From Mobula hypostoma (taxonomy: Eukaryota), in assembly GCF_963921235.1 (NCBI RefSeq), contig NC_086102.1, positions 136,958,001-137,022,000 on the forward strand: DNA of 64,000 bases. The letters are read 5' to 3'. The notes beneath the pieces were generated by a model that ran no database searches, had not been told where the DNA came from, and was given only the letters and a program-made list of their open reading frames with translations. A program made the position numbers and the translations under genes. Below, one piece after another: positions 1 to 49,725 of the stretch (positions are counted from its first letter, which is position 1; each line of letters begins with the position of its first letter).

Positions 1-109
1 GCAGACAAAGGAGATACAAAGAGGCAGGCTGACTTGCGCATAATATCTAAATGAATTCTTAATGATCAGTGATATGCAAAACAAGTCTACAAGCAAATTC
101 ATGAATATC

Positions 110-115
110 TTTATT
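110..115 (-). terminator. Putative polyadenylation signal of copy A
   Basis: AATAAA on minus strand ~225 nt after the stop; AATAAA also near the equivalent position in B (27966-27971), C (49461-49466) and the remnant (22585-22590). Confidence 0.5.
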
Positions 116-338
116 ATCTTATTTTGATCCACAATATATTAAACAATCATATACAGAAATGACAGAACATTTACAAACAATCAAATCTCCCATTTACAAT
201 AAAATCCTCAGTCAGGAGCTCCAGGCCCCTCAGTCTTGTAATCAGTAGGTACAGTACAATTGTTAACATTTTATCTATTCTGAATGAGGTTTTCTTGTGT
301 TCACATTGAGTTCAGACTCTGTGGAGTTTCATTCGTGG

Positions 339-371
339 TTAGTGCTGGGCTCTTGAGTCTTCATTTTGTTC
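339..371 (-). CDS. spp2-like A exon 10 (terminal coding part)
   Basis: ctttccattccag acceptor; EQNEDSRAQH-TAA; stop position conserved in B and C. Confidence 0.78.
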   Translation of the reverse strand, partial: EQNEDSRAQH

Positions 372-3300
372 CTGGAATGGAAAGATGAGCAGATTTGTAA
401 TTTTCAGCTGGACTGAGCTCACTCTGATGTTAATATTTTGCCATTAGTTTTAAAGATGATCATGTAGATACAAATCCTCAGTTTACACTTACATTTGAAG
501 GTTCCTCCAATGATAATTCCATTGACTTGCTTTTCATCTGTTTTATGAGATAAATTATTGTAGCATTAGAAATCATCTCCAGGTGCAAGGTTTAAGTAGT
601 GTTTATTTGTAAATGGGTAAGTGAAATCACTTTAAATTCAGAATTGCAAGTCACCGAGAAATCCCAACAAACACTTCACTTCACAATCAATCAGCAAAAT
701 ATTAACATAATGGGCTCAAAGAAGATTTATAAGGGTGTTACTGAGAATAAGGAGTTTATAAGGAGATAAGTGAGGAGTTGTTTCTCTGGAGTGCAGGAAA
801 CTGAGGAAAAATGTAACAGAGGTTTATAGAATTATGACTGACATTGTTAAAACAAATAGCCAAAGTCTTTTCCCCAGGTTAAAGGATTCTAAAGCTAGAG
901 AGCATAGGATAAATGTGAGAGGGGAAAGAAATAAATGGGATCTGATAGCAACTTTTTCATACAGAGCTGGTGTGTTTATAGAATGATCTGCCCAAGGAAT
1001 TGGTAGAGCCGGGTACAATTATGACACTTAAAATTCATTTGGACAGCTCCATGGATAGAAAAATTTTCAAGGGACATGGGGCAAGTGCAGGGAAATGGGA
1101 TTAGCTCAGTTCGACAACTTGGTGAGCACAAATGAATTGAATCAAAATTCCTGTTTCTGCATTGTATGAATAGAAGACTATTAATCTAAGAGAGGCCACT
1201 TCTTCCATCAATTGGTCTTGACTCTACTGACTTCCCTGCAGCATACACTTCCAGTCCCAGAGCCAGTAATTATATTCAATTAAATGAGGGAAATGGAAAG
1301 AATGCTCCTTTCATGAAGCCACCAGTTATATCTGCCCACAGACCATGAACAGGAGAGTGTGTCCTTTCTAATTCTATTTATTTTTCTAGGTCAAATATGA
1401 TGGCAGAATATAGTATTAATGGTAAGACTCTTGGCAGTGTGGAGGATCAGAGGGATCTTGGACTCCGAGTCCATAGGACACTCAAAGCAGCTGCGCAGGT
1501 TGACTCTGCGGTTAAGAAGGCATATGGTGTATTGGCTTTCATCAATCGTGGAATTCAATTTAGGAGCCGAGAGGTAATGTTGCAGCTATATAGGACCCTG
1601 ATCAGACCCCACTTGGAGTACTGTGCTCAGTTCTGGTCACCTCACTACAGGAAGGATGTGGAAACCATAAAAAAGGTGCAGAGGAAATTTACAAGGATGT
1701 TGCCTGGATTGGGGAGCATGCCTTATGAAAACAGGTTGAGAGAACTTGGCCTTTTCTGCTTAGAGCGGCAGAGGATGAGAGGTGACCTGATAGAGGTGTA
1801 TAAGATGATGAGAGGCATTGATCGTGGGGATAGTCAGAGGCTTTTTCTCAGGGCTGAAATGGCTAGTATGAGAGGGCACAGGTTTAAGGTGCTTGGGAGT
1901 AGGTGCAGAGGAGATGTCGGGGTAAGTTTTTACGCAGAGAGTGGTGAGTGCGTGGAATGGGCTGCCGGCAACGGTGGACGAGGCAGAAACGATAGAGTCT
2001 TTTAAGAGGCTTTTGGATAGGTACATGGAGCTTAGAAATATAGAGCACTATGGATAACCCTAGGTAATTTCAAAGGTAAGGACATTTTCGCCCCAACTCT
2101 GTGGGCCGAAGGGCCTGTATTATGCTGTAGGTTTTCCATGTTTCTATGAAAATTAAGTGAAGAACAAATTTGTAGTCAGTTGGTCATGCTCTGAAAATGA
2201 ATAGAGAATGTGTGCATTAATATGCCCTTTGTTGCCCATCTCCAGAGGGTCATTTAATTAAGATTACTCAGATTAGATTTCGTCACTATATTATAGTTGA
2301 AAATCAATAGATAAACATTCCACGATTATACTTACATGAGAAGACTCCTCGACTGATGTCTCCTTTGACTTACTCTCTACCTGCATGAAAAGATCAATAT
2401 TTATATTGTCAGAATGTTAATCAATAAAAGTTTAAGGAGTAACCCTTGAACAAATCTTTAATGACTGAATTATAAATAACATTTGATATCATTTGTGTTC
2501 AATAATGCAGTGTAGAAGTGCTCGCCAAAACAACAATGTTTTGCAACAACGATCAACATAGCCTGGATAGAGTGAGGTGTGGGGATTGGTAGTTAATTTG
2601 GGAATAATGTCCTTCCATCTCAATTAATTGGCAATGGGTGTATGAAGCTGCTCTGCATCAACACCTGGACTCTGTTACTGCTGAGTGTTACAGTCAGTAT
2701 CCTCATGCCCAGCACCAATAATGTTGATATCAAGCTCAAGTTATCCTTGTAGGAGACTCCACATTGGAGTCAAATCAACAAACTGCCCCTCAGCTAAACA
2801 TCCCCACCGGAATCAATCATCAGAATCCCTTTCTCAATACACCGATCTACAAACGTAAAATAAATGGCCCTCTGTCCCTTTATTCTGACATGGTTGAATC
2901 CAAGCTTTTAAACATTTTTTACTTGGATTCAAGGTCAGAGAGATCATCAGAATTTTTTCCATTTATACTCACATTGGTTGAATCCTCAAGTGATGTGTCT
3001 TCTGATTTGTCTTTTTCCTGTATGGAAATAATATTTATATGTTTAGGACAGGATACTGAGGAATTTTGAAAATATATAAACTGAAAAATTACCAGCTTGT
3101 ACTAGTAATAAATATTGGAATCTAATGGAGTCTTTTTTCACTCTGGAAATTTCAGAGCAGTGATTCAGTAGCAAATGCAGAAGGCCATCAAGAAGGCAAA
3201 TTGCCTTTATTGCAAGAGGACCTGACAACAAGAATACTACAATTATATTGAGCATTGATGAGTATTGGGTAATTTTGGTCTGCTTATATCAGGAAGGAAA

Positions 3301-6068
3301 TACTTGAGAAGGAGAGGCAAGAAAGGAACTATCATCAGGGTAGTTCCCAAGTCTGTCACCTGAGGACTGATTATTTAGGATGGTATCTATAGGCTGGAAG
3401 AATGAAATGTGATTGCCTTACAATGATCAAAATTATGTTTGCCTGTTCGAATAGGTAGAATACTTCACCCATCTAACAGCTTGGGTCACAGTCTCAAAGT
3501 AAAAGGTAGACCAATTAGGAATGAGGTGAGTTGAAATTAGGTGGTAGAGCTTTGGAATTTGCTACCCGAGAGAGCTGTGGAGGCTGATTCAAAATTGGGA
3601 TTGTTGGATTGTTGGATCTTAAGGGAATCGAAACGTACAGTGTTACTACAGAAAAATGGATTGAGGTAGAAATTAATATTGAATATTCTCCCAGTCTACT
3701 CTCACCCATTGCCTGGAACAGGTCTATTATGAAGAAAGATCCTCGGACTCTATTCTGACAGATCAATCTAGGTTTCACATCTTATTGAGACTCTGAAGGT
3801 AGCAACTCCCAAATTAAACTTACATTCAGAGATTCTTCGTTCAGTGAAGTTTCTTCTGACTTGCTTTTCACCTGCATAAAATAATGAACATTTATAATAT
3901 TAGCACAAGGTATATTTATTAAAATAATGCATTAATAGATTACCTCTAACTAGTAGAGCAGGATACAGAATCAAAAAAGAGGAGATGTTGACATTTCAGT
4001 GATAATCCAATGATTTATCATTAGATTAGAGAAGCCTCAATAAAAAGACTCAAAAATTAAAAAAAAACGACACCAATACACAAAAGAATACCTTGCCTAG
4101 AATCTGGTTCAGAGTGAATGGATATTCCTACAATAGAGGGCAAAGGCATCAACTGCCATCTCTTTTATTGAATCCTTCGTGCCCCTCCAAGAAGGAATGG
4201 TACTTAATGATTCCCTTTGCTGAAAGTTTGGCAGACACTCTTCTGGAAGTCCTAACTTCAAATATTAGAGTCCTCTCCATGCACATCAGGATCACCCACT
4301 GTTGCTCACACTTCATTGCTAACAATTGAGATCACAAGAAGAAAATTATAAATTACTAATTAATACTCACATTAGAGGTTTCCTCAAGTGATGATTCTTT
4401 TGATTTGCTTTGCGACTGTAAGGTGAAAGATACTTATTTTTAGATCTTCTGCATATGACACCAGTGAAATATTCAGTAAATGATTTTGTGTTAGAAATTC
4501 CATTGTCCTGAATTGTATGAATGCAGTTACCTCAATACTGTTGTCATTTGTTTCTGTTGAGTCACTCTCGCTGTCAACTGTCGTCAGACCGTCACACTCC
4601 ACTTCAACATCAGCTACCTTATCAGCAAAAAATTCCACATGGCTTTTGCAAAACCCTTTCTCCTGTTAGAGTGAAGCATAATGTAAGGAAATTATTCATG
4701 ATTCCAAGCAAGACACAAAACCAACATGATTATGATCTAACTCAATTCTTAGTATTTACTTTGATATAACTACGTATGTAAGGTCATTTCCATCAAAAAA
4801 GTTGTTAATATAGCTCATGTTTTGATGCTAATACGTGCATGGACTTGCATGATCTAATATAACTCTGGACTCACCGCAATGTTTTTAGGGAGGAAGGAGC
4901 AGCTGGGATCATCAAATTCCTGTCCAGAATTCTTGGAGCAGACAGTTTCTTTCACAGAGAATGTTAAATCCACGCTGTGGGACAGTTTACCTGTACGGTA
5001 TGTCTGAAGAAAGGAAAAGGGATTATTGGTGAATTACTATCTCTGATGTTCTTCCTCTGGTCTGATAAAGCTCAGTGCTGCATAGGGCTTTATTTTCAGC
5101 AGATAATTATACTGGCAGAATCAGAGTCATCAACCAAACTGGCCCAAGAGGCTTAATTTACCCAATGCCAAAATGGCCACTTAAACCATCGTGATATGGA
5201 TATGCAGTATGCAAGAACCGTTAGTTATTGGTGGAAAAAAACAACAAATTTCAAGACATACAGTATGACGGTGATATTGAAACTGATTCTGATTCTGAAA
5301 TTGCAAACAAAATTGGAGAAGTTTTCAGGGACTTCCAAAATAATTGGTAGAACTTTCATCCCTAGTGCTGTAACTTTGGTCCAATCAGAGTTTCATGACT
5401 CTGATTGAGAATTTAAATTCCTGATCAGATATTCGTTGAAAACACAGTATAGAATGTAATACTCAGCTCCTGTTTAATGACTAAACTTTATCTCATCTTA
5501 ATGTATCCCTAAGACTTAGATTTATACAGATTAAGGCCATTCAGCCCATCAGCCCTATACAGTCTCAACAGAACAATTCCATCAATCCCACTCTCTTGCT
5601 CCTCAAATCCCCATAATGCTGCATTGATCTTCCTATCACATGTCATTATCTCCCCTTTGCTTTCCTTTTTGCTGTTTATCTGCTCTAAGTGTAAATTTCA
5701 GTAGCCAATTAACCTGCACTCAGACACACCCATAGACTGTGAAACACAGTTAGCCAAGGACACACTTACATTTGTCACTCCACTCCTGGAGATACCACAG
5801 AGGTTGGTGATCTCGGTGATTTCATTCAGCTTTACAACTGAGGCTCTCAGAGCTTCCTTGGTGCTTGGCACTCCTGCAGAAAGAGAGTAGAAGTTGTACA
5901 GTACATTCCAACAAACTTCAGTGAATTCTTCTTACACATAGGTGAAATATCACTGACTGAAGCTCATTACCAACAACTCATTGCTCTCTGGGGTCCCACT
6001 CTCCCCTGGTACCTACCTAAGCAGTGGAGGATCTGCACGGCAATGATGGTGAGCAGGAAGGATTTCAT
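339..6068 (-). CDS. spp2: Secreted phosphoprotein 24 (SPP2)-like, copy A; 10 coding exons, 225 aa, intact
   Basis: Exons 6017-6068, 5770-5873, 4875-5003, 4531-4662, 4371-4415, 3824-3871, 2973-3017, 2336-2380, 493-537, 339-371 (678 nt, all GT-AG). Protein MKSFLLTIIAVQILHCLG|VPSTKEALRASVVKLNEITEITNLCGISRSGVTN|TYRTGKLSHSVDLTFSVKETVCSKNSGQEFDDPSCSFLPKNIA|EKGFCKSHVEFFADKVADVEVECDGLTTVDSESDSTETNDNSIE|SQSKSKESSLEETSN|VKSKSEETSLNEESLN|EKDKSEDTSLEDSTN|VESKSKETSVEESSH|MKSKSMELSLEEPSN|EQNEDSRAQH*. EALRASVVKLN, LTFSVKETVC and the C-x17-C loop match recalled SPP2 motifs (DALSASVVKVN, LEFSIRETTC). Symbol denotes family; orthology not established. Confidence 0.85.
493..537 (-). CDS. spp2-like A exon 9 (45-nt mini-exon)
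   Basis: cag/gtaagt; MKSKSMELSLEEPSN. Confidence 0.8.
715..1180 (+). mobile_element. Old CR1 3' fragment in intron 8, shared by all units
   Basis: Degenerate CR1 RT C-terminus/3'UTR; homologous insertions at ~28580-29050, ~50090-50580 and ~24990-25390. Confidence 0.6.
1386..2148 (+). mobile_element. CR1 LINE 3' fragment specific to copy A intron 8
   Basis: ORF 1397-2005 with LYRTLIRPHLEYCAQFWSPHYRKD and RMRGDLIEVYK; TTCTATG-type tail; absent from B and C. Confidence 0.9.
2336..2380 (-). CDS. spp2-like A exon 8 (45-nt mini-exon)
   Basis: cag/gtaagt; VESKSKETSVEESSH. Confidence 0.8.
2973..3017 (-). CDS. spp2-like A exon 7 (45-nt mini-exon)
   Basis: cag/gtgagt; EKDKSEDTSLEDSTN. Confidence 0.8.
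3160..3670 (+). mobile_element. Old CR1-like fragment in intron 6, shared by A, B and C
   Basis: Degenerate CR1 3' sequence; homologs at ~30280-30790 and ~51870-52400. Confidence 0.5.
3824..3871 (-). CDS. spp2-like A exon 6 (48-nt mini-exon)
   Basis: cag/gtaagt; VKSKSEETSLNEESLN. Confidence 0.8.
4371..4415 (-). CDS. spp2-like A exon 5 (45-nt S-x-E mini-exon)
   Basis: cag/gtgagt; SQSKSKESSLEETSN; conserved in B and C. Confidence 0.8.
4531..4662 (-). CDS. spp2-like A exon 4 (second disulfide loop plus acidic Ser stretch)
   Basis: ctctaacag acceptor, gtaac donor; EKGFCKSHVEFFADKVADVEVEC...DSESDSTETNDNSIE. Confidence 0.88.
4875..5003 (-). CDS. spp2-like A exon 3 (cystatin, first disulfide)
   Basis: cttttcctttcttcag acceptor, gtgagt donor; FSVKETVC...C motif. 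Confidence 0.88.
5770..5873 (-). CDS. spp2-like A exon 2 (cystatin N-terminal helix)
   Basis: ctttctgcag acceptor, gtaagt donor; VPSTKEALRASVVKLNEITEITNLCGISRSGVTN. Confidence 0.88.
6017..6068 (-). CDS. spp2-like A exon 1 (signal peptide)
   Basis: ATG at 6068, MKSFLLTIIAVQILHCL-G, phase-1 donor gtaggt; same 52-nt exon in all three copies. Confidence 0.85.
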
Positions 6069-6160
6069 TCTGCCTTGTATGGAATCAGTTAGCTGGTTTC
6101 TCAGAGCGAAGGAGCTGCTTCTCTCTCTCTTGATATGCCTTCACCTTGCTGCCTTTGCTC

Positions 6161-6184
6161 TTTATATCCTGCACCCCCACCACA
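6161..6184 (-). promoter_or_regulatory. Core promoter of copy A (TATA box plus adjacent RUNX-type motif)
   Basis: TATAAA at 6166-6161, ~95 nt upstream of ATG; ACCACA/TGTGGT at 6179-6184; both retained in B and C. Confidence 0.6.
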
Positions 6185-6859
6185 TTCAAACACAGACTCG
6201 TGTTTGCTCAGCTTGCTGACCGTGGGCACCGGAACTAGATGAAAGGTGGGTTCTAGTTATGGGCAAAGCTTCCTCCTGGTATCGTCATCATGTTTAGATT
6301 TGCTGGGAAATTGAGTGAGATCATGTTTCATTCCTTGGAATATGAAATACTAAACTTAAAGAGGAGAAGAAACATTCAACTCAAATTGATATAAATTTTC
6401 ATTTTCTTTTCTTTTCTGTCAATCCTTCTGTGTAATTTTGATGCCATTATTAGACGTGAAGAAGCTTTGTGGGCAGTTGGAAGAGATTGCTTGATGACTT
6501 CTCCAGGAATATCTCCTTTCAGAGTAAGCATCTTCAAATTGATTGTGTAGTGATTGACTTTGGAAAGTCGAATTTGAAGGCAGAATACAGGGTTAATGGC
6601 AGGAATTAGTTGTGTAGCAGAAAAAAAGGGATCTTGGGTGCCATGCCCATAGATACCATATGCCACAAGTGTTTCCATAATTCCATAAGACATAGGATCA
6701 GAATTAGGCCATTCAGCCCATTGAGTCTACTCCACCACACTATTATGGCTGATTTATTATCCCTCTCAACCCCATTCTCCTGGTTTCTCCTCTTTGAAGC
6801 CCTTACTAATCAAGAACCGATCAACCTCCAGTTTAAATATACCCAATTACTTGACCTAT

Positions 6860-17248: not shown

Positions 17249-19882
17249 TGTCTGTCTGTCTAGGTACCATATCCGATGCGGACTTTGGTGACCATGGTTT
17301 TCCATATAGATCTATCCTTCGTTTTTTGGATGACTTCCATTTCCTCGATGTGTAGACACCTGGCTATGCTTTTGATGTACATAAGCCGAGGTCTTCCTCT
17401 AGGTTTGCTCCCCTCAATCTTTCCAGAGAGTATGAGTTTTTCTAGTTCATCTTTCCGCATGATGTGTCCTAGGAACCTGAGTTGTCTTTCTCTTATTGTT
17501 GGTATGAATGATCGAACTGCTTAGGCTCTTCTGAGAACTCCTTCATTTGATGTGTGTGTGTGGTCCATGATATTTTTAACATTCTCCTGTAGAACCATAA
17601 TTCAGCTGCTTCTCGTCTCTTTTCCATTTCTGGAGAAATGGTCCAGCATTCACTTCCATAAGTCAGGATAGAATGAATGTAGAACTGCAGTATTCTGTTT
17701 TTAGTGTACGTGCTCATCTTTCTGTCTGTTAATATGGTCTTCATTTTTTGGAAAGCTTCTTTCGCCATTGCTATTCTGTATTTGATATCTGTGTCGCACC
17801 TGCCATCACTTGTTATTAGGCTGCCGAGATATTTGAATTTGTTGACTTGTTTGATGTTTGTATTTCCGATCTTGATCACACATTGTGGGATGTTTGTCTT
17901 TCTGGAGATGACCATGCTTTCTGTCTTCTTGGTGTTGATTGAGAGGCCTCTGCGATTACTTTCTGCTGCCACTATAGTAGCAGTTCTTGAAGTTTTGTTT
18001 CTGAGTCAGCTACTAGTACGATGTCATCAGCATATCTGATGTTATTTATATTATGGCCTCCAATTGTGAATCCTTTGTCTTTGATACTTCTCAAGATATT
18101 TTCACTATACAAGTTGAATAAATCTGGCGAAAAGACACAACCTTGCCTGACTCCTGCAATGATATTCACATACTCACTCACTTCTCCTTCTATTCTGATG
18201 GATGCTGTCTGGTCCCAGTATACGTTTCTTAAGAAACGTATATCTTTCCCATCTATGTCAAGATCTTGAAGCAATTCCAGAAGATCTTGCTGTCTGACAG
18301 TGTCAAAAGCTTTTGTATAGTCAGTGAAACACAGGTAGATGTCCTTTTGTACCTGGTTGTCTCGTTCACAGATCATCCGTAGCATGAAAATTGCATTTCT
18401 GGTTCCAGTGGTTTCCACAAAGCTGCATTGTTCTTTACTGATTTCTGGTTTTACGCAGTGTCTTGCTCTCATCATGGTTACTCTGAGAATAATTTTTGCC
18501 ACGTGGCTCATCAGGCTTATTGTATGATGTAACTCACATTCTGTTGCTCCCTCTTTCTTTGGAAGTGTGATGAACACTGATTTACTTAAATCATCAGGTA
18601 TCTCCCCACGATCATAGATTTCATTTGCTATTTCTGTCGTTTTCTCTATTCCAAAATCTTCTAAGGCCAGTATCATTTCAACAGCGATGTTGTCTGGACC
18701 AGTTGCTCCGTTATGTTTTGTTTTATTTACGGCTGCTCAAATTTCTGATTTTATAATGCTAGGTCCTTCAAGATTCATCTTTGCGTTCGGCTTTTTTCCT
18801 CTTTGATCTTCAAAAAGGTTCTTTTATATATTCTGTCCATCTGTGTAGGATTTCCCTTTTGTTCGTAATTAAGCTGCCATCTTTTGCCTTGATGCATCCA
18901 CTTACTGAGCAAGGTAATTTCCCCGTTAGTTCTTTAATCTTATTGTGCATCAACTTTGTTCCAGGGTTATGGGTTTGTAGCATTTCTATCTCTGAGCATT
19001 TCTCAATTTGCCATCTGTCTTCAGCTTCTCTGCATTTTCTTTTTATTGTCTTATCAAGTTGTTTGTATTCTTAGCTGTCTCTTAATTTGACGGTCTTTTT
19101 TTGTTGCATCAATTGTATTATATCTTCAGTTATCCATTTATTCTTACTTTTCTGTTCTTTTTGTGGGATGGTTTCTTTTGCAGCTACAACCATGGATTCC
19201 TTCAGTATGTTCCAGGAAGATTTGCCTCCTTCATCCTGCAGCAATCGGAAATGGTTTTTCACCTTGATTGTGTATTCTGTTTTCAGATGAAGGTTGTTTT
19301 GTAGTTGTTGATAATCCAGTGGTTCTGATCTTTTGGTTTCTTTAATTTTCTCATCTTTATTTTCATTTTGCAAATGACTGGTATGTAGTCGTTTCCACGG
19401 TCTGCTCCAGGGTAGCTTTTAGATTGAGTTATCGAGTTTTTGAATCTGTTATTGCTTGTTATGTAGTCGATTTGATTTTTGTTGTTCCCATCTGGGCTTT
19501 TCCATGTCCATTTCCTTTTTGGATGTTGTTTAAAACAAGTGTTGGTGATTATCTGATTGTTTGTTTTATACCATGATATAAGCTTTTCTCCTCTTTCATT
19601 TCTTTCTCCCAGTCCCTGGTCTCCAACAATATGGTCTTCTCTTCCCTCACCAACTTTTGCATTGAAGTCACCCATGACTATGATGGCTTCTTGTGATTTG
19701 CATTCTTCTAGTGCTTTGTCTAGGGAGTGGTAGAAGGCATCAGTTTCTTCCTCTGAGCTTCCCATTGTGGGTGCATATCCTTGGGTGATAGAGATGTTGT
19801 TTTGTTGTCCTTTTAGTTTGATTAGCATCATTCTGTCTGAGATATGCCAGTATCCTAGCAGGTTCTTGGATGTTTCTTTGTT
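17249..19882 (-). mobile_element. RTE-clade LINE, 5'-truncated, frameshifted
   Basis: APE (GYAPT, IIVMGDFNAKVG, NQIDYI) and RT (DYTKAFD, GVRQGCVFSP, IRYADD) in ORFs 19283-19924, 17972-18676, 17493-17972; GACA-repeat tail; 12-bp TSD tccatgaaacac at 17237-17248 and 19883-19894. Confidence 0.9.
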
Positions 19883-22616
19883 TCCATGAAACACAGAACA
19901 CTGTAATTCCTCATTTCCCTCCAATACTGCAATCTTGCCCTTAGGTCCTCAGTCTTGTTTTCCAGTGACTGGTTAACAAGATGCTGGGTAGAGGGGGGTT
20001 ACAATCTTTGCTTTTCAGCCTGGCTTGGAGTCCATCTCTCCTCCTTCTCTTCCAGCCAGCATTTACCCTCATCGGTGTAAAGCTGCCATACCTGCACACT
20101 TGTGAGTTAAGTTGCTGAGTCCTTCAGAAGATCGTGAAACTGCTAGTTCATTAAGATAGTTCAAAAGTATGTTGCTTAAAGGAAAATTTCATAAAGCCTT
20201 AAGTTGCTCCATCAGTTTCAGTCTTCAGAGCAAGGCATCTCCAGTTGCAGTAACATTTGAAAAATTGCTGTTGATTGGCTTCCATGATGGCAAACTTCCC
20301 CCATGTTTTTATATCTTCATAAAATGAGCTGTTTCTCTCCTCAATCATATTACTGCATTGTTTTAATTGTCCGTGAACCCCATTAAGATTGTTCATCCAT
20401 TTTCTATATCCAGAATAGCACAAGACATCTTTTCTGTATTGAGAGGTACATGAGCAGCTTTTCCTGGACTTGCAAAAGCACTGCTTTCCAGGCAAACATC
20501 CTGTTCAATGAAACTTCGTCCTGGAAAGGCTGGGTGAAATGGGTTGCGGGCAATTTGATGCAAAATATTCCTGTTACCTCAGTCCGTTTTCATGAAAGAT
20601 ACTTTGGTATGCCTGTTTCCCTACCCTGTTTATGGATGTTTGGCCAGTGTTTACTTCTCTGCACCACACACCTGTAATTTACATTGGGCAGTTAACCTGT
20701 GAGTCTTTGGGACATGGGAGAAATCTGGAGGACCTGGAGGGAAACCTATGCCACCACAACAAGCAGACTCCACACAGGCTCCCTGAAAATCGGGATCAAA
20801 ATGCAATCTCTATCAGGGTGAGGTAGTAGTTCTACCTGTTGTGCCACTCTGCTGCCCAAAGCGATAAGACTACAGAATTATAACTGAGCATAAATTAAAT
20901 TTGTTCGCTGTTCCCATAATGAGATTCTGGCCTTCCAGGTATATTATTGTCTTTACTTATGTGTCTCTCTCATGTTTAGCCCTGAAAATTAAAAGCAACT
21001 TTGAATTCAGTAAATCTAAGTTCAGACACAGAATATTGTGGCTTTGTCCATTCTGAGTAGAAACTTTCACTTCTTGATATATATCTTACTTAGAGGCCCA
21101 AACCGTTTCATAGTTAAAATCTGGCTGGAAATCTGAGAGTAGTGCTAGGAATGGATTTGGATCTGTTTGGTGATAAGGCACCAGTGAAGTCCCATACTGC
21201 TAGGTTCATTGCTCTTTACAGGAACACACAGCTTCTTGTAAATTGAGGAATTCCTGTAGTCACTTCAGGTCAGCCATGGAGGGATTTGAACACAGGTCAC
21301 TGGATTAACGTTCTAGCATTCTGGATAGCAGAAGAGGAACTTAATCAGAGTGCTAAACACACCCAACATATTGTTCTCATTTGAGACTTTGGGCAGAACT
21401 CACTTGTTGTGGGTTTTTGAGGATGTGGAAATGGTGCAGAGGTTACCAGACCACTGCCCGGTTTATAGAATCTGGGCTGTCAAGGTAGGCTGAAAAAGCA
21501 GGTACATGCTACATTAGAAAAGTGTAGAAAAACTGATTTCCACTGGGTTCCCGCTGAGTTCCTCCAGTGGATTGTCTGTTGCCTTACTGACCACAGGAGC
21601 TGGGTCTGAGTAATAGTTTTGATCGAGCCCAATCTGGCCCACTTTCTGTTACATTGTGAAATACATAAGTCACAACAGCAGCTTTCAGAGTTCGCATACA
21701 TGCCCTCAAAAGTAGAAACATGAAGTTCCCAGCCAAAGTTCCACATCAACCCCATATACTGTAACTATGTGTTCCTCAGTTCACTTGGCTTTGATATCAA
21801 TGTAAGGACAGGAAGTCAAACAGCAGCAACCATCAATCTCCCACTTACTCTACACCTGCACTGCCCCTATTGCCTTCCCTTCATCAATTCCTCCAGTCTC
21901 CTCCGCTCACCTACGTATGAGGGGCATATACAGTAGTACATTACCACTGCACCTGTTGACCTGTATGTCCTTGAGATGCAAGAAGAAACCCATACCAAGA
22001 AACCCACAAGGAGAACTTGTAAACTCCATCTAAGCAGCACTGAAAGTCGGGATCAAAGCCGGGTCCCTGGGGATGTGAGACAGAACTTCAACACTGACAC
22101 TGTTGGATATTTACCCACGGAACAAGGGAGAAAATATTTGAGCTGCTGTAAAGAGGCAGATGTTCATTTCAATAATATCTCCTTCCTATTAAAGTCTAAA
22201 CAAGCTCATGAGCCCCAAAGTCAAATTCCTTCAAAATATAATTATTGATATTAAACAAAACTTTAAAAAATGCTAAAGGCAGATTTTATCAACCAAAGAC
22301 TCTATCCTTCCTACAGTTGAAATAAGCAGTCCAAGATGCAGAGTAACTCATCCGCTGTCTGACCTTAAGTTTAAAGCAGCAAATTGCCCAACATGTTAGG
22401 AGATTTCAGCAGACAAAGAAGATACACCACCGGGTGATTACTCATCTGAACAACCCACCAGACAAAGCAGATAAGCAATTAGTCAGATACAGGCTGACCT
22501 AAACATAATAACTGGATAAACGACCGGAGATCAATGACATGCAAAATAACTTCTAGAAGCAAATCTGTGAATATCTATAATTTTTTTATTTTGATCCACA
22601 ATGTATTACAAAATAA

Positions 22617-27810: not shown

Positions 27811-30800
27811 ATTGAGGAGATTGTACATCTGGCTGTCCACTAGACAAAGGAGATACATTATCGGTGAGGGACAGGTTGACTTGAGTATAATACCTGGATA
27901 AACTCCTGTAGATCAGTGACATGCAAAAGAACTTCACAAAGCAAATCCATGAATAATGTTATTACTTTATTTGAACCACAATGTATTACACAATGATATG
28001 CAGCAAAGCACAGAACATTACAAACAATCAAATGTCCCAGTTACAGTAAAATATAGTGAGGAGCTCCAGGCCCCTCAGCTTTGTATTTCAGTAAGTACAG
28101 TACAATTATTAACATCTTGTATATTCTGAATGAGGTCTTCTTGTGTTCACACTGAACTCAGACTCTGTGGAGTTTCATTCATGGTTAGTGATGGGATCTC
28201 GAGTCCTCATTTTGTTCCTGGAATGGAAAGATGAGCAGATTTGTAATTTTCAGCTGGACTGAGCTCACTCTAATGTCAATGTTTTCTCATTAGTTTTGAA
28301 TATGATCACATCAGACACAAAACGTAGTTTAAACTTACGTTTGATGACTCCTCCAGTGACAATTCTGTTGACTTGCTTTTCATCTGTTTTACAAGATAAA
28401 TTTTTGCAGCATTAAAAATCACCTTCAGACACCGAGTTTAAATAGTTTTAGTTTGCCAATGATTAAGTGAAATCAATTTAAATTCAGTATTGCAAGTCAC
28501 CGAAAAATCCACAACAAACACACTACTTCACAATCAATCTGAATTTCAGCAAAATATTAATGTAATAGATTGATTGCTACAAAGGATGGCATTAAATTGG
28601 AGAGGGGACACAAGAGATTTATGAGATGTTACTGGGACTGGAGGGCTTGGGTTACAAGGACAGGTTGGATAGTTGAGGAGCTGCTTCTGTGCAGCTCAGG
28701 AAACTGGGGGAAGATGTGATAGAGGATTATAAAATAATGAAGGGCATAGTTAAAATGAATAGCCAAAGTCTAGCATAGGTTTAGAGGGAGAGGAGAAAGA
28801 GATAAAAGGTATCTGGGAGGCAATATTTTCACGAGGAGATGGTGGGTTTATGGAATGATCTACCTGAGGAATTGGTAGAGATGGATACAAATATGGCACT
28901 TTAAAATACATTTGGTCAGTTCCATGGAGTGGAAATGTTTCTGGGGATATGGGCCAAATGCAGGGAAATGGGATTGGCTCATTTCGGGAACCTGGTCAGC
29001 AAAGATGAATTGAATGGAAGGACCTGCCCCTGTATTGTATAACTCCAGGACTCTATTAATCCGAGAGAGATGATTCTTTCACCAATTGGTCTTGACTGCT
29101 GAAATCTCCCTGCACAGTATACTTCAGCCCCATCCCCAGTAATTATAAATAGTTAAATGAGGAAAATGCAATGAATGCTCCTTTAATGAAAGCACAGTTA
29201 TATCTGCCCACAAACTATGATTGCCCCTAGGAGAGAGTGTCTTTTCTAATTCTTTAGGTGAAGAACAAACTCATACTCAGGCTGACATTGGTCATGTTCA
29301 GAAAATGAATACAGAATTTTCTAGAGAATTTGTGCATTAATATTCCCTCCTCTGCCTAGCACTTAATTAGGTAGTCATTTAATTAAGATTGCTCATATTA
29401 GATGTCAGCACTTTACATATTATGGTTAAATCAATAAATAGATCAGACTTACATGAGAAGACTCCTCAGCTGATGTCTCTTTTGACTTGCTTTCTACCTA
29501 CAAGAATAGATGAATATTTATACACTCAACAAATTAGTTAATGAATAGTTATGGAATAGCCTTTAAATACAATGTTTAATGATTTAAACATAAATAACCT
29601 TAGATATATCATGATTTGTGATTCATTACTGCAGTGGACAAATGCTCACCAAAACAATTAGGTTCTGCAATAACTATCAACATAATCTAGATAAGCTGAG
29701 GTGTGAGGCTCAGTAGAAAACTTGAGGATCAAAGCCACATGCAATCAATTAATTCGCAATAGGTATATTGAAACTGCTCTGCACCAACGTTTCATCTTTG
29801 TTACTGGTGAGTGTTACAGATGTTGCCCTCATGTCTAGCACCCGATCCTGTTGATGCCAGGCTTGCATTATCCTTGAGGGGAGCAAATTAATCCTCAGAT
29901 TGTTGGAATTTACTCAACATCAGCCCCTCAGCATAACATCTCCACAGTAATCAAACATTCCTTCCTCAATACACTGATCTAAAGTAAATGGCTCTTCCTC
30001 CCTCTGTTCTAAAATGGTTGAATTAATGATGCTAAACATTTTTACTTGGAGTCAAGATCAGAAAGACCATCTGAACTTTTTTTCAATTTATACTCACATT
30101 GGCTCGATTCTCGAATGATAGTTCCTTTGATCTGTCTTCTTCCTGTACAGAAATAATATTTATGTATTTAATTCCAGACTGAAGAATTTAAAAAATATAT
30201 ACTAAAAAATGACCAGTGTACACAAGTAATAAATATTGAATTATAATGGCGTCTTTGTTTACTCTGGGCATTTCAGCAGCAACTGCAGCAGGCCATTAGG
30301 AAGGCAAATTGCCTTATTGCAAGAAGGCTTGAGAACAAGAGTACTGCAGTTGTATCGATCCCTAGTGAGTATTGTGTAGTTTTGGTCTGTTGACGTAAAG
30401 AAAGAGGATGAGGCATAGTTCCACCTGGATAAAGTCCGGGATGGTGCATATGGCACAAGAGGAATAATCTCTATTATTTACAGCTTTGAAGAAAAGAGTG
30501 CTGCCTTACAGTGAACAAAATTCAGAGAGGTCTTGGCTGGTTAGAAAGAAGGGATGTTTCGTCCAAGAAGCTGAGAGCTTGAGTTGCAGTTTCAGAATAA
30601 GGGATTTGCCAATTAGAAATGCAGTAAAATGCAATCTCTTCACTCAGATGGTGAATTTTTGCAACTCATTACCCTAGAGAGCTGTTAAGGCTCATTTAGT
30701 GAGTTCATTCAAATCAAGGATTGGTGGATTGTTGGATATTAAGGGAATCTAGGCTTATGGCGTTCCTGAAGGAAACTGGTTTGAGATAGAAGATAATATT

Positions 30801-31111
30801 CAATGTTCACCTTGTTTTCTCTCACCCACTGTCTGGAACAGGCGTATTATGAAGTCAGATCCTCAGCATCTATTCTGACAGATCAATCTATGTAGATTTC
30901 TCATCTTATTGAGAATCTGAAGATAACTCCAAAATTAAACTTACATTTGGAGATTCTTCCACTGGTTTCTTTTGACTTGCTTTTCACCTATATAAAAGTA
31001 CAAAGATTTATAACGTTAGTACAAGATATATTTATTAATAGAAAGCATTAGCAGATTACCTTCAAATAGTAGATCTGATACTAAAATTATAAAAGGGAAG
31101 CTATTAATCCT

Positions 31112-31332
31112 AAACAACACACACAAAATGCTGGAGGAACTAAGCAAGTCAGTCAATATCTATGGAAATGAATGAACAGTCAACATTTCAATCCTGATGA
31201 AAGGTCTCAGCCCAAAATGTCAACAGTTTATTCATTCATTTCCACAGATGCTGTCTGACCTGCTGAGTTCCTCCAGCAATTTGAGTGTGTTGCTTTGGAT
31301 TTCCAGCATCTTCAGACTTTCCAGTGTTTATG
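31112..31332. repeat. Older Penelope-type inverted terminal repeat pair in intron 5 of copy B
   Basis: aaaatgctggaggaact...agttcctccagca inverted arms around degenerate cctgatgaaaggtctcagcccaaaatgtc. Confidence 0.55.
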
Positions 31333-32436
31333 ATTAGCTCTTAATCCTGACATTTCTGAATGATGATCCCATGACTTAGCATTAAATTGCAGAAGTCTCA
31401 ATAAAAAGTATCACTCTCCACAGTACACCAATGTTCGGAAACATGCCTGGCTAAGAGTGTGGTGTACGGTTAATGGATATTCCTACCGCAGGTGAAACAG
31501 GCATCATTACCATCTGTTTTTTGAATCCATGGAAGGATTGGTACTTAATAACTTTCAGTGATAAGAGTTTGTCAGACACTTCTCCTGTAGTCCTGTTCTG
31601 CTGATGCTCAGCTCATCTTCAGCAGAGAACAAACTCATCATGCACTGAAATCTAATATTAGGATCCCCTCCCTACACATCAGACTGGGACACATGCTGTC
31701 TCGTCCACTATTCCTAACGGAGAACTTAACATTTTCTTGCTAACGATTATAATCACCTCAGCACAAACAATTGAGATCAACAAGAAAAATATCTGATAAA
31801 TTACTGATTAATACTCACATGTGAGGTTTCCTCAAGTGGTGTTTCTTTTGACTTGCTTTGTTCCTGTAAGATAAAGATAGTTATTTTTAGATCTTCAACA
31901 CACATAAACAGTGAAATGCTCAGTAAATGATCTTCTGTTAGAAATTCCATTGGCCTGAATTGTATGAATACAGTTACCTCAATACTGTTTTCACTTGTTT
32001 CTGTTGAGTCACTTTTGCTGTCAACCGTCGTCAGACCGTCACACTCCACTTCAACATCAGCTGCCTTATCAGCAAAAAAATTCCACATAGCTTTTGCAAA
32101 ACCCTTTCTCCTGTTAGAATGAAGCATAATGTAAGCGTAATTTCAAGCAAGACATGAAATCAACATGATTATGATCTAATTCAATTCTTAGCCTTTACTT
32201 TGATATAGCTACACATGTATAGTTCGTGTTTAATCCTAAAACATACATGGGTTTGTATGATCTGACATATAACTCCGGACTCACCGCAGGGTGAAAGGAG
32301 CAGTTGGGATCATCAAATTCCTGTCCAGAATTCTTGGAGCAGACTGTTTCTTTTACGGAGAACGTTAAATCCATGCTGTAGGACAGTTTACCTGTACGAT
32401 ATGTCTGCAGAAAGGAAAAGAGGTTATTAGTGCATT

Positions 32437-32537
32437 AGTCCTGACGAAGGGTCTCGGCCTGAAACGTCGACTGCACCTCTTCCTAGGGATGCTGCCTGGC
32501 CTGCTGCGTTCACCAGCAACTTTTATGTGTGTTGCTT
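32437..32537 (+). mobile_element. Short Penelope terminal-repeat insertion with hammerhead motif in intron 2 of copy B
   Basis: agtcCTGACGAagggtctcggcctGAAACGTCgact at 32437-32472; flanked by direct repeat gttattagtgcatt; absent in A and C. Confidence 0.8.
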
Positions 32538-33444
32538 GTTATTAGTGCATTGTTATATCTGGTGTTCTTCCACTGGTCTGACAAAGAGCAGAGCAACACA
32601 GGGCTTTATTTACAGCTGATGGTTACACTAGGTTAGTCAAAATAGAGAAGATAATTAATTTGTTCAATGGTAAAATTGCCACTTAAACTGTCATGATAAG
32701 GATACTCAGTTTGCAGGAACCCTTAATTATGGCAGGAAATTAGCAAACAAAATTTGGGAAAACTTTCAGTGATTTCCAAATCAAGGACTGGAAGAACTTC
32801 CAACCTTAATTCCAAAACTTTGTCCCAATCAGAGTTCCACACCTCAGATATTGATTGAGAATTCAAAGCACTGATCTGATATACATGGAAAACTCTTTAT
32901 ATAATATCATGTTCTGCAAGTTATTCTCCCTATCACATAACATCCTCTCCCACTTGATTTTTTTTCTCGTTAACCTACTCTCAAGGTAAGTTTCAGTAGC
33001 CAATTAACCTGCACTCAGACGCATCCATAGTTTGTGAAGCACGATTAGCCAAGGACACACTTACATTTGTCACTCCTCTCCTGGTGATACCACAGAGGCT
33101 GGTGATCTTGGTAATTTCATTCAGCTTTATAACTGAGGCTCTCAGAGCTTCCTTGGTGCTTGGCACTCCTGCAGAAAAAGAGGGAAAGTTGTAGAACAGA
33201 TTCCAATGAACCTAAGTGAATTCTGCTTACACATGGATGACATATCATTGACTAAAGCACAGAACCAACAACTTACTGCTTTCTGAGGTCTCTGTCTCCC
33301 CAGTACCTACCTGAGCAGTGCAGGATCTGCACGGCAGCGAGAGTGAGCAAGAAGGATTTCATTCTGCCTTGTGTGGGATGGACCAGCTGGTTTCTCAGAG
33401 TGAACAAGTTACTTCTCTTTGCCTTCACCTCACTGCCTTTGGTC

Positions 33445-49692: not shown

Positions 49693-49725
49693 TCAGTGCA
49701 GGGCTCTCGAGTCCTTATTTTGTTC
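49693..49725 (-). CDS. spp2-like C exon 10 (terminal coding part)
   Basis: EQNKDSRALH-TGA. Confidence 0.78.
   Translation of the reverse strand, partial: EQNKDSRALH

Follow-up and report, generated by a model that had tools for sequence, protein, structure and literature searches.

Elasmobranchs do without the large repertoire of secretory calcium-binding phosphoprotein (SCPP) genes found in bony vertebrates. A gene family that bears on the mineralization of cartilage without this set, a point already published, is Spp2, which encodes secreted phosphoprotein 24 (Spp24); the human gene, SPP2, consists of 8 exons over 27 kb and encodes 211 amino acids (aa) (PMC3838770, PMC4602186). An expansion of Spp2 in the chondrichthyans into the clades spp2.1, spp2.2, spp2.3, and spp2.Like, all at one locus (sh3bp4/arl4c/nme9/vps8), was described by Debiais-Thibaud et al. 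(2026, BMC Biol; PMC13188829), who used the Mobula hypostoma assembly for both phylogeny and synteny and found tandem duplicates at that locus. The same study reported the accumulation of S-x-E motifs in Spp2, their reading as Fam20C-type sites, and the expression of spp2.2/2.3 in mineralizing catshark chondrocytes; the terms "exon," "intron," and "splic" have zero occurrences in its text. The present analysis concerns a window of 64,000 nucleotides (nt) of M. hypostoma (NCBI RefSeq assembly GCF_963921235.1, contig NC_086102.1, positions 136,958,001 to 137,022,000 of the forward strand), to which the positions given below refer. A blastn search with the exons of one gene copy (A) located two further tandem copies (B and C) within it, each with ten corresponding exons in unchanged order. 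Copy A is a 10-exon Spp2 paralog encoding a signal peptide, a cystatin/cathelin-like domain (exons 1-4), and a disordered tail. We show here that the tail is an array to which a single ancestral exon, 45 nt long and in phase 0, gave rise by serial duplication, that this duplication preceded the split of A, B, and C and largely that of rays and skates, that the number of units varies by whole exons between paralogs and between annotated isoforms, and that the S-x-E positions of the tail are under purifying selection.

Copy A is a compact gene on the minus strand, read from position 6200 down to 300. All of its internal exons have AG at the acceptor and GT at the donor, and only the first intron, being in phase 1, departs from phase 0. 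Its features are:

6161-6166, minus strand: TATA box (TATAAA) approximately 95 nt upstream of the ATG, a putative promoter element.
6017-6068, minus strand: coding part of exon 1, with the ATG at 6068; 52 nt ending in phase 1 and encoding the signal peptide MKSFLLTIIAVQILHCLG, residues 1-18 of the NCBI model P0065.
5770-5873, minus strand: exon 2, encoding the N-terminal helix of the cystatin-like domain; AG/GT borders, an RNA contig on 5770-5863, and a 100% match to P0065.
4875-5003, minus strand: exon 3, encoding the core of the Spp-24 cystatin-like domain and the first disulfide loop; Pfam Spp-24 at E=2.7e-5, and joined to exon 4 in an RNA contig.
4531-4662, minus strand: exon 4, encoding the second disulfide loop and, after it, an acidic stretch (DSESDSTETNDNSIE) that includes 2 S-x-E; a contig of RNA run X1 shows its splicing to exon 3.
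4371-4415, minus strand: mini-exon m5 (exon 5), 45 nt, SQSKSKESSLEETSN; AG/GT borders, phase 0, contained in P0065.
3824-3871, minus strand: mini-exon m6 (exon 6), 48 nt, VKSKSEETSLNEESLN; RNA joint 3017/3824, cassette behavior, left out of P0065 and of P0059 (the model of copy C).
2973-3017, minus strand: mini-exon m7 (exon 7), 45 nt, EKDKSEDTSLEDSTN; RNA joints 2380/2973 and 3017/3824, GT-AG.
2336-2380, minus strand: mini-exon m8 (exon 8), 45 nt, VESKSKETSVEESSH; RNA joints 537/2336 and 2380/2973.
493-537, minus strand: mini-exon m9 (exon 9), 45 nt, MKSKSMELSLEEPSN; RNA joints 370/492 and 537/2336.
339-371, minus strand: coding part of exon 10, EQNEDSRAQH and stop; joint 370/492 in two RNA contigs, with the 3' untranslated region extending to AATAAA.
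110-115, minus strand: poly(A) signal AATAAA.

The five mini-exons are in phase 0 at both ends, each is flanked by AG and GT, and together they share the peptide pattern x-K-S-K-S-x-E-T-S-L-E-E-S-S-N. Each 45-nt exon supplies one unit of 15 residues, in which the canonical S-x-E sites are located at S5-x-E7 and S9-x-E11 with a further serine, S3, upstream. The predicted product of 225 aa contains 11 S-x-E, all encoded from exon 4 onward and nine of them within the tail, together with four S-K-S-x-E chains. An earlier first-pass annotation, made from the sequence of the window, had claimed five phase-0 mini-exons of 45-48 nt with paired S-x-E motifs as exons 5-9, their constant order in the three copies, 11 S-x-E with additional chains, serial exon duplication before the gene duplications, and the possibility of in-frame skipping; the coordinates, splice borders, phases, and peptides bore out the first of these, the motif count proved exact, and the remainder held in the comparisons presented below. 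The 86 residues of the tail include 19 E, 4 D, and 23 S and make up a strongly anionic segment, and S-x-E is more frequent in it than its composition would predict from shuffled tails, with 9 vs. 5.0 for copy A (P=0.023) and 10 vs. 3.5 for copy C (P=0.0001). No repeat was returned by Tandem Repeats Finder for positions 1-6300 of the window, as expected with the units split by introns.

Evidence for expression of the array was provided by run X1, for which 15 of 48 joints were listed. Contigs of this run contain the joints 370/492, 537/2336, 2380/2973, and 3017/3824, all GT-AG on the minus strand and equivalent to the order exon 10-m9-m8-m7-m6, indicating that mini-exons are present in RNA; a separate contig links exon 4 with exon 3. 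A second contig, the joints of which (537/2339, 2380/3842, and 3868/4426) lie off the exon borders, was set aside as an imperfectly placed paralog. With runs X2, X3, and X6, coverage was mainly on a high-copy element at 1285-2270. In contigs of X3 and X6 (4428-4633), exon 4 continues into intron 4 down to 4428 and then diverges, and in P0100, the NCBI model of another M. hypostoma copy, the reading also continues past the exon 4 donor (…SIEVTAFIQFRTMEFLA). There may be read-through forms that lack the tail.

Because all units begin and end in phase 0, any of them can be skipped without loss of the frame. In the NCBI model of A, m6 is left out and there is read-through after m7; m6 is also missing from the model of C, and the RNA contig contains it. 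Among related species, isoforms differing by exact whole units are annotated for one gene of Amblyraja radiata (242/227/212 aa) and one of Hemitrygon akajei (224/209 aa), these being annotation models and not inspected reads; the unit absent from the shorter H. akajei isoform is the counterpart of m6.

The history of the array was reconstructed by comparison of copy A with the other two copies, which are:

28185-33362, minus strand: copy B, 10 exons, with the reading frame lost in exon 4 (133 nt) and again in m6 (43 nt) and with exon 3 shorter by 9 nt, in frame.
49693-55451, minus strand: copy C, 10 exons, intact, 225 aa with 12 S-x-E, represented by the NCBI model P0059.

As determined by blastn, the order of the mini-exons is kept in B (31819..28339) and C (53822..49848). 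Paralogous units inside copy A are 58-73% identical, compared with 80-89% for positional counterparts between copies, and the best cross-copy match of each mini-exon is its positional counterpart (80-89% vs. 56-76% for others). With positional counterparts closer than neighbors, the five-unit array must be older than the A/B/C duplications. Moreover, when set against a gene of the skate Rhinoraja longicauda that likewise has five units, m5, m6, m7, and m9 each match the unit at the corresponding position (0.76-0.87), and this agreement at four of the five positions places the array already in the batoid ancestor. The first-pass annotation had also proposed comparing the mini-exons with their flanking introns and counting them in other species. 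In the first comparison, the intron flanks of different mini-exons gave a similarity of 0.41-0.43 vs. 0.29-0.35 for control flanks taken from other exons, a residual similarity compatible with the duplication of exon and flank together. For the second, loci from other species were fetched and proteins were mapped onto them, and units were found as separate 45-nt AG/GT exons in the sevengill shark (3), the skate (5, with the exception that the fifth unit continues into the last exon), and the whale shark (6); a thorny-skate protein of 253 aa (P0032) has 7 units as counted by sequence alone, exon borders not being part of that count. The spp2.1-type gene of the sevengill shark possesses exactly one 45-nt mini-exon (VQITSEESSLEESLN) followed by the same 10-codon last exon and, with a single unit in this gene type, a one-unit tail is the likely ancestral state.

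A different organization is found in Callorhinchus milii, the elephant shark. Its Spp24 (P0011, locus L001) resembles copy A in the codon lengths of exons 1-4 (18/34/43/44), in a short last exon (DCSRARC), and in a tail very rich in S-x-E. Unlike copy A, however, the whole tail is encoded by one 465-nt exon. Within this exon 5 (L001 6226-6478), there is a tandem repeat with a 45-nt period, 5.6 copies, and 85% matches that is composed of 15-nt E-S-R-E-x subunits, indicating that amplification was intra-exonic and did not proceed by exon copying. Two lineages have therefore multiplied S-x-E in one gene by different routes. The period of the elephant-shark repeat equals the length of the elasmobranch mini-exon (45 nt), reflecting either coincidence or descent from the same unit.

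Constraint on the units was assessed both between copies and across the family. Between A and C, the mini-exons show a rate of nonsynonymous change (dN) of 0.12 and of synonymous change (dS) of 0.39, a ratio of 0.32 with changes mostly synonymous, while dN/dS of the cystatin exons is 0.41. Among 98 distinct family units, conservation amounts to 100% for S5, 95% for E7, 95% for S9, and 97% for E11, with the x positions varying freely; these units were gathered with a profile made from the units of this window, which favors look-alikes, and the contrast between motif and non-motif positions remains informative. The Ser and Glu positions are better kept than synonymous sites, contrary to the outcome that the first-pass annotation had named as refuting it.

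Taken as a whole, these data are very probably best explained by an Spp2 protein with an acidic tail assembled from mini-exons that is secreted by mineralizing chondrocytes, phosphorylated by Fam20C, and capable of binding mineral, its valency being set by the number of units. Exons 1-4 provide the signal peptide and the cystatin/cathelin-like domain with its two disulfide loops, and exons 5-9 the disordered acidic tail. Fam20C would phosphorylate the S-x-E serines in the Golgi, and the protein secreted by mineralizing chondrocytes would carry as many as two or three phosphates per unit, with phosphorylation of S5 turning S3 into an S-x-pS site. The multivalent phospho-tail would then bind calcium phosphate and tune the nucleation or growth of mineral in calcified cartilage, and valency and charge would be set by the number of units, which would depend on whether exons are gained or lost, on the splicing of cassettes, and on the number of gene copies. 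Secretion, phosphorylation, and mineral binding are proposed here from mammalian Spp24, from the S-x-E/pS specificity of Fam20C, and from the catshark orthologs. The Fam20C reading had been part of the first-pass annotation: the constraint on the motif sites stands, and the same reading is published (PMC13188829), with phosphorylation itself a prediction.

A number of observations weigh against this explanation. In Mobula, phosphorylation, mineral binding, and the expressing tissue are each something that we infer, and the authors of the catshark study state that extra S-x-E could inhibit, not promote, mineralization (PMC13188829). With respect to transcripts, a joint of m5 was not among the 15 of 48 listed for run X1, and the one well-resolved contig of this run joins m6 not to m5 but to intronic positions 4092-4219 (minus strand), a segment with a GT donor at 4090-4091 and in-frame stops. 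This transcript is probably non-productive or incompletely processed, and the segment itself may represent a poison exon or an alternative 5' end, or may belong to a transcript that was unfinished. Furthermore, when the copies are compared at the nucleotide level, conservation is no greater for the mini-exons (0.80-0.85) than for their 150-nt intron flanks (0.80-0.82), compared with 0.90-0.92 for the cystatin exons; the constraint applies to the motif and not to the whole unit. Lastly, Lys occupies position 4 in 87% of the 98 units (e.g., 4401-4403 in m5) and position 2 in 57%, and neither is called for by S-x-E recognition; they may derive from purine-rich splicing-enhancer words, protease sites, charge patterning, or another function.

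The last two observations would be accommodated if the tail served as a generic spacer, polyanionic or shed by proteolysis, with Ser and Glu codons kept mainly as purine-rich GAA/AAG splicing enhancers and not for phosphorylation. Exons of 45 nt usually need exonic enhancers, the units are rich in AAG/GAA, and mammalian Spp24 is heavily proteolyzed (PMC4602186). However, dS in the mini-exons is not reduced and dN is, which indicates selection on the protein; S-x-E is enriched beyond composition; and in the elephant shark, S-x-E recurs at five-residue intervals within one large exon for which exon definition poses no problem. This alternative is accordingly considered improbable, and a tail retained for its S-x-E sites is preferred.

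The assignment of the gene to Spp2 was made by profile and by fold. On exon 3 of copy A alone, Pfam Spp-24 (PF07448) scores 24.7 bits, just below its cut-off of 26, with Cathelicidin (PF00666) well behind (E=0.018); the full-length relatives found by phmmer with exon 3 reach 38.6-46.2 bits on Spp-24 against the same cut-off, and P0065 carries a precomputed PF07448 match. Relatives in rays, skates, sharks, and the elephant shark are labeled "secreted phosphoprotein 24-like," and the M. hypostoma models of that name correspond to the three copies (P0065 to A and P0005 to B, each at 100%, and P0059 to C at 97-100% per exon). Word-indexed protein searches returned only chondrichthyan proteins among the matches listed (120 of 134 in the last), and the assignment to Spp2 was based on Pfam and structure. 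Across 40 family members, the four cysteines that form two disulfide loops (C74, C87, C100, and C118) do not vary. The H. akajei ortholog of copy A, P0036, the tail of which is 92% identical, was modeled with AlphaFold, and in this model residues 21-120 adopt a cystatin-like fold of one helix and four strands (pLDDT 81-92), with the tail, residues 128-215, devoid of secondary structure (pLDDT <50). A Foldseek search of the PDB with this model returned the cathelin-like domain of LL-37 as the best match (TM by target 0.74), along with cystatins and fetuin-B. In the reviewed AlphaFold database (Swiss-Prot), the top nine matches were all secreted phosphoprotein 24, from chicken to salmon (E 4.5e-10 to 7.5e-7), followed by kininogens and cathelicidins.

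Two further traits of Spp24 were sought in copy A. A Ser-rich region directly behind the cystatin domain is present (DSESDSTETNDNSIE ending exon 4, then the five units) and phosphorylatable by sequence. The Arg-rich C-terminus of the osteichthyan/lamprey type was not found in copy A, the last exon of which encodes only EQNEDSRAQH. The same loss was reported for catshark spp2.2/2.3 (PMC13188829), and consequently an Arg-rich C-terminus does not define chondrichthyan clades. In a quick tree, the window copies were placed apart from the spp2.1-type clade, spp2.2 and spp2.3 were unseparated, and the long elephant-shark branch was positioned otherwise than in PMC13188829; the window copies most likely belong to the many-copy clade of the chondrichthyan expansion, spp2.3.

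The Pfam matches, named models, fold, and SPP24 structural neighbors together identify the gene as an Spp2 paralog, and neither as a cathelicidin nor as an SCPP. A cathelicidin-type host-defense gene, comprising a cathelin pro-domain and a released peptide, would agree with the layout of exons 1-4, which follows that of the four-exon cathelicidins, as well as with the LL-37 match in the PDB and the weak Cathelicidin score. It is nonetheless highly unlikely, and was rejected, given that Spp-24 ranks above Cathelicidin in Pfam, that SPP24 is ahead by 3-5 orders of magnitude in the AlphaFold database, and that the tail is anionic, not cationic, and extends over six more exons for ten in all. Least credible of all, and likewise rejected because of its domain and intron phase, is the reading of copy A as a true member of the SCPP/SIBLING type with descent from SPARC-like. 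Copy A indeed combines exon duplication with short symmetric exons in phase 0, S-x-E, and a disordered acidic product, all of which typify SCPP genes (PMC9122587), but exons 1-4 encode a cystatin-like domain with cysteines that matches Pfam Spp-24, every one of the nearest reviewed structures is an SPP24, phase 1 is that of the first coding intron, and the only elasmobranch SCPP reported is a partial sparc-L duplicate of other structure (PMC9122587). The SCPP/casein framing of the first-pass annotation is replaced accordingly by Spp2, the likeness being architectural only.

Apart from the three Spp2 copies, the window contains only LINE fragments. Copy B is either a young pseudogene or the product of a homopolymer error of the assembly: its exon 4 has a run of 7 bases at 32074-32080, compared with 6 in A (4627-4632) and C (54073-54078), and its m6, at 30945-30987, is 43 nt long and out of frame. 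The NCBI model P0005 bypasses the frame breaks by way of a shifted frame, losing a conserved cysteine, and the counterpart in Mobula birostris (P0055) has exon 4 intact and is without the m6 and m7 units. The last 43 residues of P0005 are drawn from 21517-21645 (minus strand), approximately 6.7 kb past m9 of copy B, with the true last exon (28185-28217) skipped; with this distant 3' end, it looks like a chimeric gene model. The m9-m8 intron of copy A carries the very high-copy element 1285-2270, which includes an open reading frame on the plus strand (1397-2005) without a Pfam match and resembles the C-terminal part of a LINE ORF2. RNA depth over the element reaches tens of thousands in all four runs, and the consistent differences of these reads from the window sequence indicate that they come from many other copies. 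Between A and B, LINE fragments at 17972-19924 (minus strand) match RVT_1 (E=7e-24) and Exo_endo_phos_2 (E=2e-7).

In comparison with the osteichthyan SPP2/Spp24 genes (human, bovine, chicken, and salmonids), copy A has in common the Pfam Spp-24 match, the cystatin fold with two disulfide loops, the Ser-rich region behind the domain, which in osteichthyan SPP2 is phosphorylated, and a multi-exon gene with small tail exons. Osteichthyan SPP2 differs as a single gene per genome with mainly liver expression and no array of repeated S-x-E units, and its Arg-rich C-terminus is cut down to DSRAQH in Mobula copy A. The SCPP/SIBLING genes (SPP1, DMP1, and the caseins, and elasmobranch scpp; Leurs et al., 2022, PMC9122587) resemble copy A in their small symmetric phase-0 exons, exon duplication, Fam20C motifs, and disordered acidic secreted products, and also in a fast sequence turnover in which the motifs are kept. 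The density of S-x-E is approximately 10-12 per 100 aa in the tail described here vs. the 1.7-5.1 quoted in PMC9122587. SCPP/SIBLING genes stem from SPARC-L whereas the present gene is of the cystatin superfamily, with a folded N-terminal cysteine domain and a first intron in phase 1. Among the hallmarks of SCPP genes, duplicated small S-x-E exons are found in copy A, and a phase-0 first intron and SPARC-L descent without a folded Cys domain are not; the likeness is one of architecture, not of descent. More tentatively, and with the balance tipping slightly toward doubt, Spp2 as a cystatin-family gene may have convergently rebuilt the SCPP architecture in elasmobranchs, with phase-0 mini-exons bearing two Fam20C sites each, exon duplication, and splicing cassettes, such that phosphate valency would be tuned by exon number, inclusion, and gene copies, and in holocephalans by a 45-nt repeat within one exon.

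The closest system remains that of Debiais-Thibaud et al. (PMC13188829), where the 45-nt phase-0 unit and its serial duplication, the whole-unit isoforms, the broken copy B, and the intra-exonic contrast of the elephant shark do not appear. The Spp2 system itself is already published, and the mini-exon mechanism together with the elephant-shark contrast is apparently a modest undescribed refinement. Exon copying, through the gain, loss, and skipping of whole units, gives the reported S-x-E accumulation a concrete mechanism that can be put to the test, and the natural series of 1-7 units, with the elephant-shark repeat, offers material for asking how phosphate valency affects mineral binding. 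Read at the level of exons, the locus adds detail to a known system rather than establishing a new one.

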